A stretch of 64,000 bases of DNA from Setoptus koraiensis. Its lineage: Eukaryota > Animalia > Arthropoda. The notes beneath the pieces are model-generated. The model searched no databases. It was not told where the DNA came from and worked only from the letters and a program-made list of their open reading frames with translations. Positions 42,901-48,843 of this stretch are shown here, one piece after another (position 1 is the first letter of the stretch; each line of letters starts with the position of its first letter). Location: assembly GCA_048013815.1 (NCBI GenBank), contig CM106585.1:16988001-17052000 (forward strand), given 5' to 3'. The position numbers and the translations under genes were made by a program.

Positions 42901-45189
42901 CCAATGGTCCAGTAATTGAAACAGTCGAAACAGTATCCATTTACACATCATAATGCTTGCAACATGTTGGCACGGTTCGAATGGCTTAAGTTGAGACGAG
43001 CATTATGTGAGGGGTAATGAGATATGACGATTTCAACTCATTATCTGTCAGTCAGTGTATCACTTAATTGATTCTGGGAATGTTTGAAAAATTTAGTTCT
43101 AAGCACATGTTTGTACTCGTGATGTCGGACCATCAAGAGTTACATGTTTGTGACAGTGTGATACTAGTTTTGGCGCAATTGAATGACCATTAACCCTCAG
43201 TATCGTCATGCCAGATCGGGGGGCGGCGGCTCGGCTGCTCACATAATACATGTATTCATGTAATCATCAATCATCAGTAGATCATCATCTCTTGATATGA
43301 GGGAGGGAGAGATTGTTTTGTGGGGCACCATCGAAGTTTTTCCTTCAAACTGATGAGAACAACAACTTAACTCTTGACTTACTCAACATGAGTGAACCTC
43401 CCGGGGAAATTCATCTGATGGTGGTGATCAGCAGCCATCTGGAACTAATTGATTCGGCCGATCTAACTATATAAACAGTTTTTATTGTTTGTTTGTGCCA
43501 GCCGAAAGAGTTGCAAACAGTCGACTATTCTTCCGCTAGCGATGATTAGTAGCGTAATCAAGATGGCGATTTTTGCTGAGCAAACACGTATCATAAATGT
43601 GTCATGCATGATGAAACAATGACACTACATGATTAGATGAAAAACAACAACAATAGATTGCCAAAAAGTGGTTGTTGTTACGCATACAGTGTAAGATAAG
43701 TATCAGCAGTTTCGGGTTCATCAGTCGATGACTAGCAAGACCGGGTTGAGTTTCGACGGGCCGGGGACCGTGTGACTTGCGATCGTTGGATCCATCAGCC
43801 GGCGATTTCTGGTGTATTCAGCTATTGTTAGCCTCGGAAGAAGAAGAAATTTTGCGAGAGCTCACAGGCTAGAATATTGTTAGAATAGTATCCATGATAT
43901 ACAATTACAATTATAATTACAATTATATGAAGATTCACACGGGCAAAGTGTCTTTAGGGACAAAGTGTCGACTGCGTTACATCGAGGTGCAACACGATAG
44001 ACCTCTGGTGACGGAATCAGACACTAGTTTTCAAATCCATGTGCAGTTACTTTTCAAGGGATTTGCCCACAACAAGTGACTCACCAACAGTTGCAGTTGT
44101 AAAAACGAAACCAAAAATATATGCATTATGCTGTGCCATTGTTCGTGTGCATAGCGGCACTACTCATGTGCTAGTGCTAGTACAGGGTGTATCATATTTA
44201 TTAGCATAGTTATGCCAACAAATCACAGCCTTTTGTGTGTCACTATTGGCACGACAATGATGATGTTGCCCGACAAGTGAATGTTGGTTTGTAACTCTTT
44301 GTACTGTGGGGAGGTTACGAACGCAGATACTCATAACTGTATTGCATAAGCTAAGCTTCTTTTTTGATTGATAATGATCGATTGTGTCGTGATGTGACAA
44401 TTTAGCTTGGTAAGCAGTGTCTGCGTCGGCACACGATCCCGTCAAGTAGCCGAGTCATCGGGTGGGACACAATTTGAGCTGCAACACAATTTCAAAATAT
44501 ATTGCCCTACCATTGCTGTCATGAACCGTTTCTGAGCTCGCCATAATTAATATTAGTGACATGTACAAACCATGTCAATGTGTTAAATAAATAGTGGAAA
44601 TCACATTAGTCATTCCGGATGTGGGTGTGGTGACGCACGAGACATTCGGACAATGGTGAATCCCGCTATGGCTAGCGTTTTGTTTGTGTCCATTGATATC
44701 ATCGCGAATCGCAAGTGCGCTGTATGGGCTTCACTGCGGTGAGTGAACAAATTTTTGAAGCACCCAGTACAAAAATCATTTGCGCTGAGTTGTGCATACA
44801 GTTGTGTGTGTACTTTGTTTGATTTGTGCTATGGCAAATGCAATGCATTTCTCTGGAATTTCTCTCACAATTTGTCAGTGTTTAAATCTTTATATTGCTG
44901 CTCTCTTTGGCGTATCGTCGTCATCAGACATCATTAATATTTGCCGACCTTTGGATCAGATATCATTAGCTATGATCGAGTACGTCAATTGCAGCGTTTA
45001 ATCGCTCACATAGACAGGCCAACCAAGCAACAGGACTTGCATCCGAGGTAGATCTGCATTTGGAAACACTGTTACCAGCCAACCAAGTCTATCTATTATG
45101 AACTTATTATTGATAGTAATTTAAGTAATATCATTCTACTATACTATATATAATCCAGGATTTGACATAGCTAGCCCCTATGAGCGACA

Positions 45190-46131
45190 TTGTCGATGGC
45201 CACTCAAATGAGCACCCAAGCATCAACCATTGCAGCATGTAGCATTGGTGCAACTGGTATCATGCAAAAATGTAATCAATTGCAACCTAATCTTATTTGT
45301 CCCATTGAGGCATCATTCGATCCATACGATGAGGATAGCTGGTTCTTTGGCTCTATGGGTCGCAATGAAGCAACAGACCTTTTATTGACAGAGCCAGAAG
45401 GAGTTTTTATTGTAAGAGAAAGTACAACAAGTCTCGGTGATCTCGTGTTGAGCGTTAAAGAAAGCGCCGACAAAGTTAGTCATTACATCATCAATAAGAT
45501 TACTGTTAAAAAAGATTCCTCAAAAACGCATCAAATCAGATTTAAAATCGGTGATCAATCCTTCCTAGATGTGCCATCATTATTAACATTTTATAAAAAA
45601 CATTTTCTAGATACAACCTCATTGAAAAAACCCGCTAAAGTCAGAGAGAAAAAATCACAAATGTTCATCTGTGATTATCTTGAGACATTATCACAAAATT
45701 CAAATACTACCACCTCGTCTACGTCAGATGACCAACTGTCACAAAGCCAACAATCTAACAAGAGCCATACAATTAGTGTTTCACCATTAGATATGAGTGG
45801 CCAACTAATTACAACTTCCAATCAGGATACCTTCAATCACCCACCGACTCACTTTGGCATTCATGATAACTTCGATCATGCAATCAGTCATCACTCCACC
45901 ACTTTAAAGAGACACCACAATTTACCTCGTCTTGCACGAGTTATTAGATCAAAGATTCCTAACGCCTACGATAAGACCGCTTTAACCTTGAAATTAGGCG
46001 ACATAATCAAAGTAACTGAGACTCAAGTTAGTGGCCAATGGGAGGGAGAGCTCAACGGTAAAAAAGGCCATTTCCCCTTCACACATGTTGAATTTATTGA
46101 AGGACCTGAAGTACAGCCCGATGTCTCCTGA
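45190..46131 (+). CDS. Crk: Crk adaptor with SH2 and C-terminal SH3 only (N-terminal SH3 absent)
   Basis: Intronless 313 aa. Crk-type SH2 (WFFGSMGR..GVFIVRESTT..LSVKE..KVSHYIIN..FLDTT) and the Crk-specific SH3C (IPNAYDKTAL.L..GDIIKV..GQWEGELNGKKGHFPFTHV). Confidence 0.93.
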   Translation: MSMATQMSTQASTIAACSIGATGIMQKCNQLQPNLICPIEASFDPYDEDSWFFGSMGRNEATDLLLTEPEGVFIVRESTTSLGDLVLSVKESADKVSHYIINKITVKKDSSKTHQIRFKIGDQSFLDVPSLLTFYKKHFLDTTSLKKPAKVREKKSQMFICDYLETLSQNSNTTTSSTSDDQLSQSQQSNKSHTISVSPLDMSGQLITTSNQDTFNHPPTHFGIHDNFDHAISHHSTTLKRHHNLPRLARVIRSKIPNAYDKTALTLKLGDIIKVTETQVSGQWEGELNGKKGHFPFTHVEFIEGPEVQPDVS

Positions 46132-46511
46132 ATACCACCAATTGTCCCTTCAAAGGTACAATTGAAGACAGAACTGACTCTTCTGCCGGTTTTACGTATT
46201 CTGTTTCTTGCGAATGTATTCTTTAATACTGTCACATATTGTTCTTATTCATTAGATATAGGTACTAATGATTTCATCCAGGATCTCAATGAGGGCGCAT
46301 CCTATTGTATAGTATGATGAATCAATACAATACTGATCAACCTTACATATTGCACGTGTTGACCCTAATGAATTTGTCCATGTCACTTGAACCGACCAAC
46401 TGGTCAATAAATAAAATTTACGAAAATTCCAGCTCACATGTATGAGTTCAAGTATGTGTTCATTCGCAAATAATACATACGATATGTATTCTTTAATAGT
46501 ATCACAAGAGT

Positions 46512-47639
46512 TCAGTCGTCGAGAAAAGTTATCTGACTGGGTCCACCTTTGCGCATATACCTTCGATATCGTTTAAAACAGGCATTTTGACTTAGAGCTG
46601 ACTTGATTTCATCTTCTTTCCTTTGTCGCCAGCTTTGAAAACTTTCCTTACACCAGAGCTTTTGCTTGAGCATCCAATCAAGGTCTGTTTTATTGTTGAT
46701 ATCGGGCAGCAAATTCGTTAAATACGTTGGAGCTAAACTGCACTCCTCTTGTTGTTTGCAGAAAGCCACCAAACCTTTCATGTTTTTCTTAATTAAATAT
46801 ATCTGCTCTTCCAAACCATAGGCTTGTTTGTTGATATTGAATTTCCAAATCCATCTCAAGAACCAGATAATGTTGTAGAGCATTAACCACGGTGCAAGCA
46901 ACAGTTGTACCCATAAAATGTTTTTGAAATCGGGTAAAGTAGCATATCCCTCTGAGACGACCATGCCCTCCGATACAATCACATCCCTAACTGTTTGCTC
47001 CTCCAAAATGCGTAACAACTTTCTATTTGGCCTCTTCTTACTATTAGTGGTTTCGTGTTTTATATGTGAGCTTGATGGTGGCCAGAGACCACGTTTTGTC
47101 GCAAGATCTAAAGCCTGATTTCTGTAACGGGGTATGGTGAGTAGAAAATTAACGGCATCATTATACCTTGTTTCCTGTATCCAGTACTGGTAGCCGGATA
47201 TCAGAGTGATGAGCATTGCCAAAGCGAGACGAGCGTCTACTTTAGCACCATAAGCTCTTTTATAGTATCTATAATAATGTTGGTAATAATCTTCAGGGTT
47301 TTCTAGCATGTCATCATAATCTTGCTTTTTGCCGGGATCCTTCAGAGTCTCATAAGCAGAAGCTATTAATCTAAATTTCTCGGTTGCAATTTCTTTTTCC
47401 TTCTCGCTCTTGAAACGATCAGGATGCCATTTTTTGGCCACGGCACGATACAATTTTGCGATCTCATCTTTAGTTGATTCTCTCGTTGCTCCTAGGACGT
47501 CATAACAATTGTTCAAACCACAATATAAACCGGGTATACCTTCAAATTGTTTGCTATGCACAAAATCAACCGAAATTGTTAAACTAATAAATATGCAACT
47601 AAAGAGTGTAACAAGTATGCTATTAAAAAAATCCAACAT
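46512..47639 (-). CDS. DNAJC25: DnaJ homolog subfamily C member 25
   Basis: Intronless. Signal/TM, LYCGLNNCYDVLG, J-domain WHPD, central TMs, C-terminal YRRYMRKGGP..F.DD. Confidence 0.93.
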   Translation of the reverse strand: MLDFFNSILVTLFSCIFISLTISVDFVHSKQFEGIPGLYCGLNNCYDVLGATRESTKDEIAKLYRAVAKKWHPDRFKSEKEKEIATEKFRLIASAYETLKDPGKKQDYDDMLENPEDYYQHYYRYYKRAYGAKVDARLALAMLITLISGYQYWIQETRYNDAVNFLLTIPRYRNQALDLATKRGLWPPSSSHIKHETTNSKKRPNRKLLRILEEQTVRDVIVSEGMVVSEGYATLPDFKNILWVQLLLAPWLMLYNIIWFLRWIWKFNINKQAYGLEEQIYLIKKNMKGLVAFCKQQEECSLAPTYLTNLLPDINNKTDLDWMLKQKLWCKESFQSWRQRKEDEIKSALSQNACFKRYRRYMRKGGPSQITFLDD

Positions 47640-48843
47640 GACGGAATATGAACTATGCTTCGAGTTGATAGCGATATTTCCTCGGTTCCACTATTAGTTA
47701 TATTTCACTATTTGTTTCGGATATTCTGGGGTTACTTTGGACTCAAGTTATTTGGCGAAGCTGATAAAATGACTGAGGCAACGAGAACAAAATTGCGCAT
47801 CATCAAAGTTGCGACAATTCATTCAACTTGCACTAGTGGCGGTTCAATCATCCATCATGAAGTTGGAACATTGTCTAAACAATTGCAGTGGTTCAGTTCA
47901 ATAAATGTCCGCGAGAGACGCTCTCCATCGTCTAACAATGCTCTAGTCGATGGACGTTTCAATGCTCATGTGTCCCACTACTAGAAAAAGTGTATCAATC
48001 ATGAAACAAGTGCAAAGTTGAAACGTTGTTCGGAACACCCTACAACTTCGGTCTGTAAATTTAAGTGCGGCACAAACGCCTCTAGCGAACTTTTATCAAA
48101 CGAAAAGTAACTGCGTCGAAAATTGTCAACTGGGCATACGCAATGACGAAAAGAACAACAATGGCAAGTGGATGTAGAGCAAGTGGAACAATTTACCTGC
48201 CAACTTTCAGTCTTACCTTTGTAAGAAGAACTAGAAAGTCACGATTGGTGGGATGATTCGTTGAATTACTCCCAGGTGACTAGTCGTAATCGGATGTACT
48301 TGAATGCGAGATCTAGTACGGAAAGAAACCTCGCCAAGACGGAATGTCGTAATGCTCGAATTAAAATCACCAGTGACACATTTCTTCTCATGGTACAAAT
48401 TATCTCATAGAAAAGTCACACCTCTTAACTAACATTGAGCTCGACTTTATTTGTGCGATAAAAGTGCTGATCACAGAACAAACTAATTTTCAATTATTGA
48501 GTTGAGCATCCACGAGTTATTTTATTTTTCTCCAACATTTTGTTGACGATTGAATACTATATTAAGCGAAGAACGTCTATCTATTTAACACTCTCAACAT
48601 GAAGTTATAATGTCCACCCTAGCTCGGTCTCTGAAAGCTCCAGTAGTAGACATTATCAACAATCAGTTTAGACTTCGATAATTTTCAAAGTGATATTCGT
48701 CCATGAATATTCACACAGAAAATAGTCGCTCTAAATTTCTCAAGTCGAGATACCTGATCCATAAAAAATCTGTCATATTATATCGTTTGTCTCACATGGT
48801 CTGGACATACGTTTTGATCCAATAATTTAAATGTTTTTTTACA

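Follow-up and report, generated by a model that had tools for sequence, protein, structure and literature searches.

A Crk gene encoding SH2 and SH3C domains without the SH3N domain

Structure, expression, and constraint of the Crk gene

We analyzed a stretch of 64,000 nucleotides from Setoptus koraiensis (assembly GCA_048013815.1, contig CM106585.1, positions 16,988,001 to 17,052,000; hereafter called the window, to which all positions refer), which carries a gene for the adaptor protein Crk. In textbook Crk, the SH2 domain serves as the input, the N-terminal SH3 domain (SH3N) as the output that reaches the effectors DOCK180, C3G, Sos, and Abl, while the C-terminal SH3 domain (SH3C) is seen mainly as a regulator of SH3N. 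The Crk of the window consists of SH2 and SH3C, and SH3N is missing. Its coding sequence (CDS) lies in a single uninterrupted open reading frame (ORF) at 45190–46131 on the forward strand, where the first ATG is at 45196 and the stop codon is at 46129–46131. An in-frame TGA at 45181–45183, just 5′ of this ATG, ruled out an N-terminal extension of the protein from an upstream exon. The SH2 domain is of the Crk type: the arginine of FIVRES is intact and VSHYIIN is present, both in invariant alignment columns, and LDTTSLKKPA closes the domain 5′ of the linker. SH3C carries PNAYDKTAL, GQWEGE, and GHFPF. The linker between the two domains is 97 residues long, and no PxxP motif was found across the whole protein. 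An exact-sequence database look-up of the protein returned no record.

A preliminary description of the locus, made from the sequence alone, had claimed that the segment 45640–45915 lacks SH3N and holds about 90 Ser/Thr/Gln/His-rich codons without Trp, with Crk domains on both flanks. This segment is in frame with the CDS and comprises 92 codons inside the linker (codons 149–240), of which 48% encode Ser, Thr, Gln, or His, none encodes Trp, and one encodes Tyr; Pfam identified SH2 on the 5′ side and SH3C on the 3′ side (Table 1), so that the composition and the flanks were as described. The same description had found the spacing similar to that of fly Crk. The length is indeed alike, but this was coincidental, as the linkers of relatives are only 51–70 residues long.

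Next, we searched the linker for SH3N. Pfam at E ≤ 10, given the isolated linker of ~100 residues, reported nothing SH3-like, and no SH3 was reported between SH2 and SH3C. A hidden Markov model (HMM) of SH3N was then built from 110 Crk proteins of arthropods, with shuffled sequences used as controls. Canonical Crk scored 100–118 bits against this HMM, and the SH3 domain of a Csk-type kinase encoded in the same window scored 64.7 bits. In contrast, the linkers of the window Crk and of its SH3N-less relatives never scored above the shuffled controls, and these proteins yielded only a weak cross-match of SH3C (~2–9 bits). AlphaFold2 (AF2), run with a shallow input alignment of 13 sequences, predicted SH2 as folded with a predicted local distance difference test score (pLDDT) of 82–93 and SH3C as folded with ~70–82, while residues 164–240 stayed below 50 and a single low-confidence helix was placed at residues 155–165 (MFICDYLETLS). 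All three approaches thus spoke against a degenerate SH3N within the linker, and this possibility was rejected. Furthermore, when the full window was searched by tblastn with five canonical Crk proteins, SH3N-like coding DNA was found only at 246–467. Together with an SH2 match at 657–761, this could suggest that the window opens with another Crk gene, but both matches are parts of the Csk gene, whose order is SH3, SH2, and kinase. These results confirmed that the window Crk comprises SH2 and SH3C without SH3N.

To follow the transcript, four public sequencing runs (X1, X2, X5, and X7) were compared with positions 43500–48500. Contigs of X7 were confined to 44835–46096, and the flanking intergenic DNA and the neighbouring gene were at zero depth; X7 was therefore treated as RNA. 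One X7 contig skips 45046–45156, which has GT..AG ends, where the DNA runs X1, X2, and X5 read straight through. A second X7 contig (45465–46096) is gapless and colinear with the DNA over the end of SH2, the entire linker, and SH3C, indicating that the linker is the same in the mature mRNA as in the genomic DNA and that the only intron lies in the 5′ untranslated region (5′UTR). A hidden SH3N exon or an alternative splice was rejected on the same grounds, given that the 5′UTR intron is the only joint and that the 64 kb hold no further SH3N DNA apart from that of Csk. The Crk gene is thus expressed, and its transcript is without an SH3N exon. Two observations that the preliminary description had named as able to overturn its reading were accordingly not made: neither Pfam nor the custom HMM matched an SH3 in the segment, and the RNA-derived contigs contained no SH3N exon.

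The closest database protein to the window Crk (P0001, 90% identity) is encoded on Logan contig L001, which is collinear with 43422–46899 of the window, including a convergent neighbour with a DnaJ domain, at ~77% nucleotide identity. We calculated the ratio of non-synonymous to synonymous substitution (omega) by the Nei-Gojobori method on the codon alignment of the two Crk genes, whose synonymous divergence (dS) was 0.57. Omega was 0.076 over the whole Crk; SH2 gave 0.077, the linker 0.099, and the N-terminal extension 0.22. For SH3C it was 0.007, reflecting one non-synonymous against 22 synonymous differences. Therefore, Crk is a working gene under strong purifying selection, with the tightest constraint on SH3C.

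Table 1. Features of the Crk gene in the window
Feature	Position	Strand	Evidence
5′UTR exon 1 (minimum extent)	44835..45045	+	X7 contig joined to 45157
5′UTR intron, 111 nt, GT..AG, sole intron of the Crk gene	45046..45156	+	joint 45045->45157 in X7 only
Coding sequence of Crk, 311 codons and a stop	45196..46131	+	ORF; collinear relative L001 90% identical, omega 0.076
SH2 domain, aa 39–146	45310..45633	+	Pfam PF00017, E 3e-14; AF2 pLDDT 82–93; omega 0.077
Disordered Ser/Thr/Gln/His-rich linker, aa 147–243, at the place of SH3N and YxxP	45634..45924	+	no SH3 signal; omega 0.099
Conserved linker motif KKSQMFICDYLETL, predicted short helix	45649..45690	+	clade consensus [KR][KR]SFxxD[YF][LI]xE
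SH3C domain, aa 244–301	45925..46098	+	Pfam PF07653, E 5e-13; omega 0.007; AF2 folded
RT-loop of SH3C, PNAYDKTAL	45958..45984	+	PNAYD, T, A, and L invariant in two alignments

Two further features were seen around the start codon. An out-of-frame upstream ORF of 20 codons (45180–45242, forward strand) lies in the spliced 5′UTR; it begins 16 nt before the Crk ATG, overlaps the CDS, and may act as a translational regulator of Crk. A second in-frame ATG stands at codon 5 in a better context.

Distribution of SH3N-less Crk and origin of the loss

Among the arthropod Crk matches listed, the proteins without SH3_1 were P0001, those of Fragariocoptes setiger (P0002) and Aceria tosichella (P0020), several unnamed Logan and JGI proteins, and one Blattella gene model; all the remaining ones were SH2-SH3N-SH3C. 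We then searched 5.8 billion proteins with a profile made from the alignment of SH3N-less proteins. The top 15 clusters, which comprise F. setiger, A. tosichella, and 13 further clusters, scored 310–408 bits, and all have the SH3N-less architecture, without PF00018. The lowest score of this group was 310 bits, the best canonical Crk followed with 286 bits, and no SH3N-bearing protein was found within the score range of the group among the matches listed.

Unrooted trees were built from SH2 and SH3C columns only, so the missing domain cannot drive the result. The SH3N-less proteins fell on one side of a branch with support of 100/98 (8 versus 22 rows) and 100/99 (15 versus 19 rows), and their nearest canonical neighbour was the Crk of the acariform Halotydeus. 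Genomic contigs of eight members (L001–L006, L020, and L035) are compact and gene-dense, and their Crk ORFs are uninterrupted or nearly so: SH2 and SH3C are 50–110 codons apart in one ORF, except that a single 81-nt intron splits L006 and L035. In 79 metagenome loci, all the other contigs with both SH2 and SH3C have SH3N between them. In the JGI metagenomes with eriophyoid-type contigs of 62 kb and 173 kb, the only Crk locus among the best 80 loci is SH3N-less.

The tree places the clade beside acariform Crk, the position expected for the one Crk orthologue of arthropods, indicating that the window Crk is, as judged from this position, the Crk orthologue. The loss of SH3N is a trait of a whole mite superfamily, with at least 15 proteins in one clade, and is not the oddity of a single species that the preliminary description had suggested. 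We read the window as that of an eriophyoid-type mite, and we think that the loss probably happened once, on the stem of that group. The window agrees with the published eriophyoid genomes (PMC7738191; bioRxiv 10.64898/2026.08.24.746826) in its gene density, G+C content of ~40%, intronless CDS, and retained 5′ intron.

The motif YxxP was next compared. The Crk proteins of Halotydeus, Panonychus, Ixodes, and Centruroides carry Y[NT]TP ~8 residues before the RKLP that leads into SH3C. YxxP is absent from the window linker and from all 10 SH3N-less proteins examined first, and the linkers of the further examinable members also lack it, except for that of P0128, which has YPIP elsewhere in its linker; this comparison leaves out P0127 and the L006-type relatives, whose linkers are not delimited by the same pattern. 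YxxP is not universal in arthropods, since it was seen near SH3C in 21 of the 120 arthropod matches listed. In vertebrates, YxxP is phosphorylated by Abl docked on SH3N and then closes SH2 (PMC5043372, PMC2689226). The disappearance of YxxP together with SH3N suggests that the whole autoinhibitory loop was discarded.

Alternatively conserved elements were observed in the clade. The linker motif [KR][KR]SFxxD[YF][LI]xE was aligned across nine SH3N-less proteins with one invariant Leu and is present in further members. It reads KRSFTKDYLAE in relatives and is degenerate in Fragariocoptes; the window form, KKSQMFICDYLET, has a two-residue insertion. In SH2, the clade has the signature SVKExxDK[VI]SHY with one extra residue and a lengthened DE-loop region, and the window form is SVKESADKVSHY. 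In SH3C, the PNAYD, T, A, and L of PNAYDKTAL, as well as W-EGE and GHFPF, are invariant in both canonical and SH3N-less Crk, and the Lys of PNAYDKTAL is Arg in L020. We considered whether KKSQMFICDYLET is a relic of strand a of SH3N (AKYDFEGS): its F-x3-Y spacing resembles the junction of the insect skipped forms described below, but it gave no HMM score, which leaves the idea speculative and without support.

Exon structures of canonical genes were then compared to consider how SH3N was lost. In Panonychus citri, SH3N is exactly one exon of 183 nt with phase 0 at both ends (L086:4251–4433), and Halotydeus has the same upstream intron. In insect-type loci, the SH3N core is on a separate exon. 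In Nilaparvata lugens, the two RefSeq isoforms X1 (P0135) and X2 (P0132) differ only in the SH3N core exon of 43 residues, which X2 lacks, and the Blattella germanica gene model P0056 shows the same deletion of the core. The symmetric exon of Panonychus and the skipped core exon of the insect models thus indicate that removal of the SH3N exon preserves the frame, and an SH2-SH3C splice form may already exist in arthropods, as these gene models suggest. It has been reported that intron loss in eriophyoids is 3′-biased and is attributed to recombination with spliced cDNA (PMC7738191), and that thousands of introns were lost on the eriophyoid stem branch (bioRxiv 10.64898/2026.08.24.746826). The structure of the window Crk, with a 5′ intron only, fits this 3′-biased, reverse-transcriptase (RT)-mediated loss (PMC7738191). 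SH3N would then have been lost by deletion, or by fixed skipping, of a frame-preserving exon during the RT-mediated intron purge at the base of Eriophyoidea. The fixation of an exon-skipped Crk copy is a plausible route, which we put forward with lower confidence than the loss itself.

N-terminal extensions were also seen in the clade. The window Crk has 38 residues before SH2, compared with ~4 in canonical Crk, and Q/S/T/N-rich extensions of 37–125 residues precede the FDPYD start of SH2 in P0123–P0126, P0130, P0053, and L020. Separately, the relative P0127 (223 aa) has ~16 additional residues within SH3C, between WEGE and GRKGHFPF, which could reflect either an in-frame intron left unspliced or a genuine insertion in a loop.

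Proposed function of Crk without SH3N

Taken together, we think it probable that the window encodes an orthologous, expressed, and functional Crk of the eriophyoid type, in which SH3N and YxxP were lost once on the stem of the clade of Fragariocoptes, Aceria, and the window, leaving SH2, a tether, and SH3C. In such a protein, effectors with PxxPxK motifs (DOCK180/Mbc, C3G, Sos, and Abl) would no longer be recruited through SH3. With no internal phosphotyrosine (pTyr) switch, SH2 would not be closed, and Crk would probably be a constitutively open adaptor of two modules. SH2 would dock on pYxxP sites, and the disordered tether with its conserved motif would join it to SH3C. The RT-loop, W-EGE, and GHFPF elements are those with which SH3 domains usually contact their ligands. 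The output could run through this face of SH3C, by a non-PxxP partner or by PNAY acting as a phospho-docking site. Most likely, we infer, Crk couples the docking of SH2 to whatever the SH3C face binds. In vertebrate Crk, the transactivation of Abl has been linked to the PNAY motif, and mutations in SH3C alter how the DOCK1/ELMO complex turns over (PMC2689226).

SH3N is the best-conserved domain of Crk from choanoflagellates to humans (PMC5043372). The preliminary description had proposed that its loss may bear on engulfment and myoblast fusion. It has been reported that direct binding of Crk to DOCK180/Mbc is dispensable for engulfment in LR73 cells (PMC2689226), and that direct binding of Crk to Mbc is dispensable in fly myoblast fusion (Balagopalan 2006, as cited in PMC6741062). 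Since this direct binding is dispensable in these settings, the loss of SH3N may be less catastrophic than the textbook scheme suggests.

The preliminary description had offered two functions, namely a decoy of SH2 alone or an adaptor that signals through SH3C. As a decoy, Crk would only occupy and mask pYxxP sites, with SH3C kept at most for folding, localisation, or nuclear export and with no downstream output. Such a role is compatible with a protein that has neither a PxxP-binding domain nor a PxxP motif and in which the pTyr-binding residues of SH2 are intact; moreover, CRM1 is the sole direct ligand of SH3C reported in vertebrates (PMC2689226). However, a mere decoy would not need an SH3C about which selection is tighter than about SH2 (omega 0.007 versus 0.077), the positions of the RT-loop, WEGE, and GHFPF are invariant across canonical and SH3N-less Crk, and the linker is also constrained (omega 0.10). 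Because SH3C is the most constrained segment, we regard the pure decoy as unlikely, and an adaptor with output through SH3C would fit better.

It is very unlikely, in our estimation, that the window gene is a subfunctionalised paralogue, that is, an additional regulatory copy beside a canonical SH2-SH3N-SH3C Crk elsewhere in eriophyoid genomes. Room for such a copy is left by the extent of the searches, as the genomic scan for SH3N covered the 64-kb window and the protein searches covered the best 120 matches listed. Nevertheless, among these matches the named eriophyoid entries (Fragariocoptes and Aceria) appeared only as SH3N-less proteins, and the gap in score that separates the clade (310 bits or more) from generic arthropod Crk (286 bits or less) contained no SH3N-bearing protein. 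The single Crk locus of the JGI metagenomes and the position of the clade beside acariform Crk, as expected of the one arthropod orthologue, point in the same direction. The preliminary description had likewise raised the idea of a silent copy beside a canonical Crk. The gene is not silent, as its expression and its omega of 0.076 indicate, and a canonical Crk is argued against by the tblastn of the window, by the search of 5.8 billion proteins, and by the 15 of 15 relatives that are SH3N-less. Finally, an artefact is hardly credible, be it an error of assembly, a pseudogene in decay, or an SH3N that has degraded in place and yet folds as SH3, for although the linker is similar in length to SH3N plus the inter-SH3 region of fly Crk and the AF2 alignment is shallow, independent DNA runs and the RNA run give the same colinear sequence, omega is 0.076, the linkers of relatives are far shorter (51–70 aa), and the SH3N HMM does no better on the linker than on shuffled controls.

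Several points weigh against the functional Crk with a single ancestral loss that we favour. The output mechanism through SH3C is a conjecture, CRM1 being the only known partner, and the functional consequence of losing SH3N is drawn by inference only, which tempers the value of the finding. As the scan of DNA for SH3N extended over the 64-kb window, a divergent canonical Crk could in principle lie elsewhere in the genome. The eriophyoid identity of the window derives from named homologues rather than from a taxonomic marker. As to the route of the loss, the evidence for exon loss is circumstantial. The single 81-nt intron of L006 (3336–3416; the same in L035) sits between SH2 and the KRSFTKDYLAE motif, on JGI metagenome contigs of 62 kb and 173 kb, and neither its phase nor its position agrees with the "RP|A" intron of acariforms; it was thus rejected as a retained intron between SH2 and SH3N, being unlike those of Panonychus and Halotydeus. 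Furthermore, no relic of strand a scored in the mite linker, compared with 9–10 bits for the skipped insect isoforms with the SH3N HMM.

We then compared the mite Crk with known forms. Canonical Crk of invertebrates (Drosophila Crk, C. elegans CED-2, and tick and mite Crk) and vertebrate CrkII and CrkL resemble it in SH2, with 42–47% overall identity, and share with it the FLVR arginine, VSHYIIN, the atypical SH3C (PNAYDKTAL, QWEGE, and GHFPF), and the "[KR]xLP" lead-in to SH3C. The mite Crk differs from them in the absence of the entire SH3N and of the chelicerate Y[NT]TP, in its low-complexity N-terminal extension, and in its intronless CDS. The insect gene models that skip SH3N (N. lugens X2 and B. 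germanica P0056) have the same order of SH2, linker, and SH3C through frame-preserving exon removal. However, these are predicted forms that accompany a full-length isoform of the same gene and keep strand a (AKYDFEGS, 9–10 bits), whereas the mite locus and window have no SH3N exon and no strand-a match, the RNA is colinear, and the SH3N-less form is the only one seen. CrkI and v-Crk (SH2-SH3N) are, like the mite Crk, two-domain truncations in which intramolecular regulation is removed (PMC2689226). The truncation is the opposite one, as they keep SH3N, lose SH3C and YxxP, and are hyperactive, whereas the mite Crk keeps SH3C and loses the effector domain. Dominant-negative Crk mutants with a dead SH3N come close in that SH2 binds pYxxP, as predicted for the mite, without recruitment of PxxPxK effectors. 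These mutants carry engineered point changes and are expressed on top of wild-type Crk, whereas the state in the mite is natural, ancient, under purifying selection, and apparently without a wild-type copy.

A full-text literature search found no paper on Crk in eriophyoids and none on a natural Crk without the N-terminal SH3, and the eriophyoid genome paper (PMC7738191) mentions neither Crk nor SH3. The finding is thus a new case of a natural, lineage-wide change of architecture in a well-known adaptor, which isolates the unexplained SH3C. A superfamily that keeps Crk without SH3N and YxxP, with SH3C as its most constrained part, would imply that SH3C acts on its own and that the link from SH3N to effectors is dispensable or can be rewired. 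The SH3N-less mite Crk therefore offers a concrete way to approach what SH3C does, a question of long standing, as well as a clean case of streamlining at the level of domains among the smallest genomes of arthropods.

A wider proposal can be made tentatively, and we hold it possible rather than probable: SH3C may have an ancient effector or docking function independent of SH3N, and eriophyoids would represent a ~200-million-year separation of function in which the arm of SH2 and SH3C was kept. This form would match a real SH3N-skipping isoform of insects and would have been fixed by overwriting with spliced cDNA in the intron purge. If this is true, an arthropod can be built without PxxPxK-based recruitment of DOCK180 and C3G by Crk, and a comparison of the SH3C interactomes of mite and fly could reveal the partner of SH3C.

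Neighbouring genes in the window

The gene for the Csk-type tyrosine kinase lies at 279–1845 on the forward strand, and its SH3, SH2, and kinase parts are split by short introns. On the other side of Crk, a gene for a DnaJ-domain protein of 375 aa with predicted membrane segments is encoded on the reverse strand at 46512–47639, convergent with Crk and ~380 nt from its stop codon. The same DnaJ-domain neighbour adjoins the Crk of the relative in L001.

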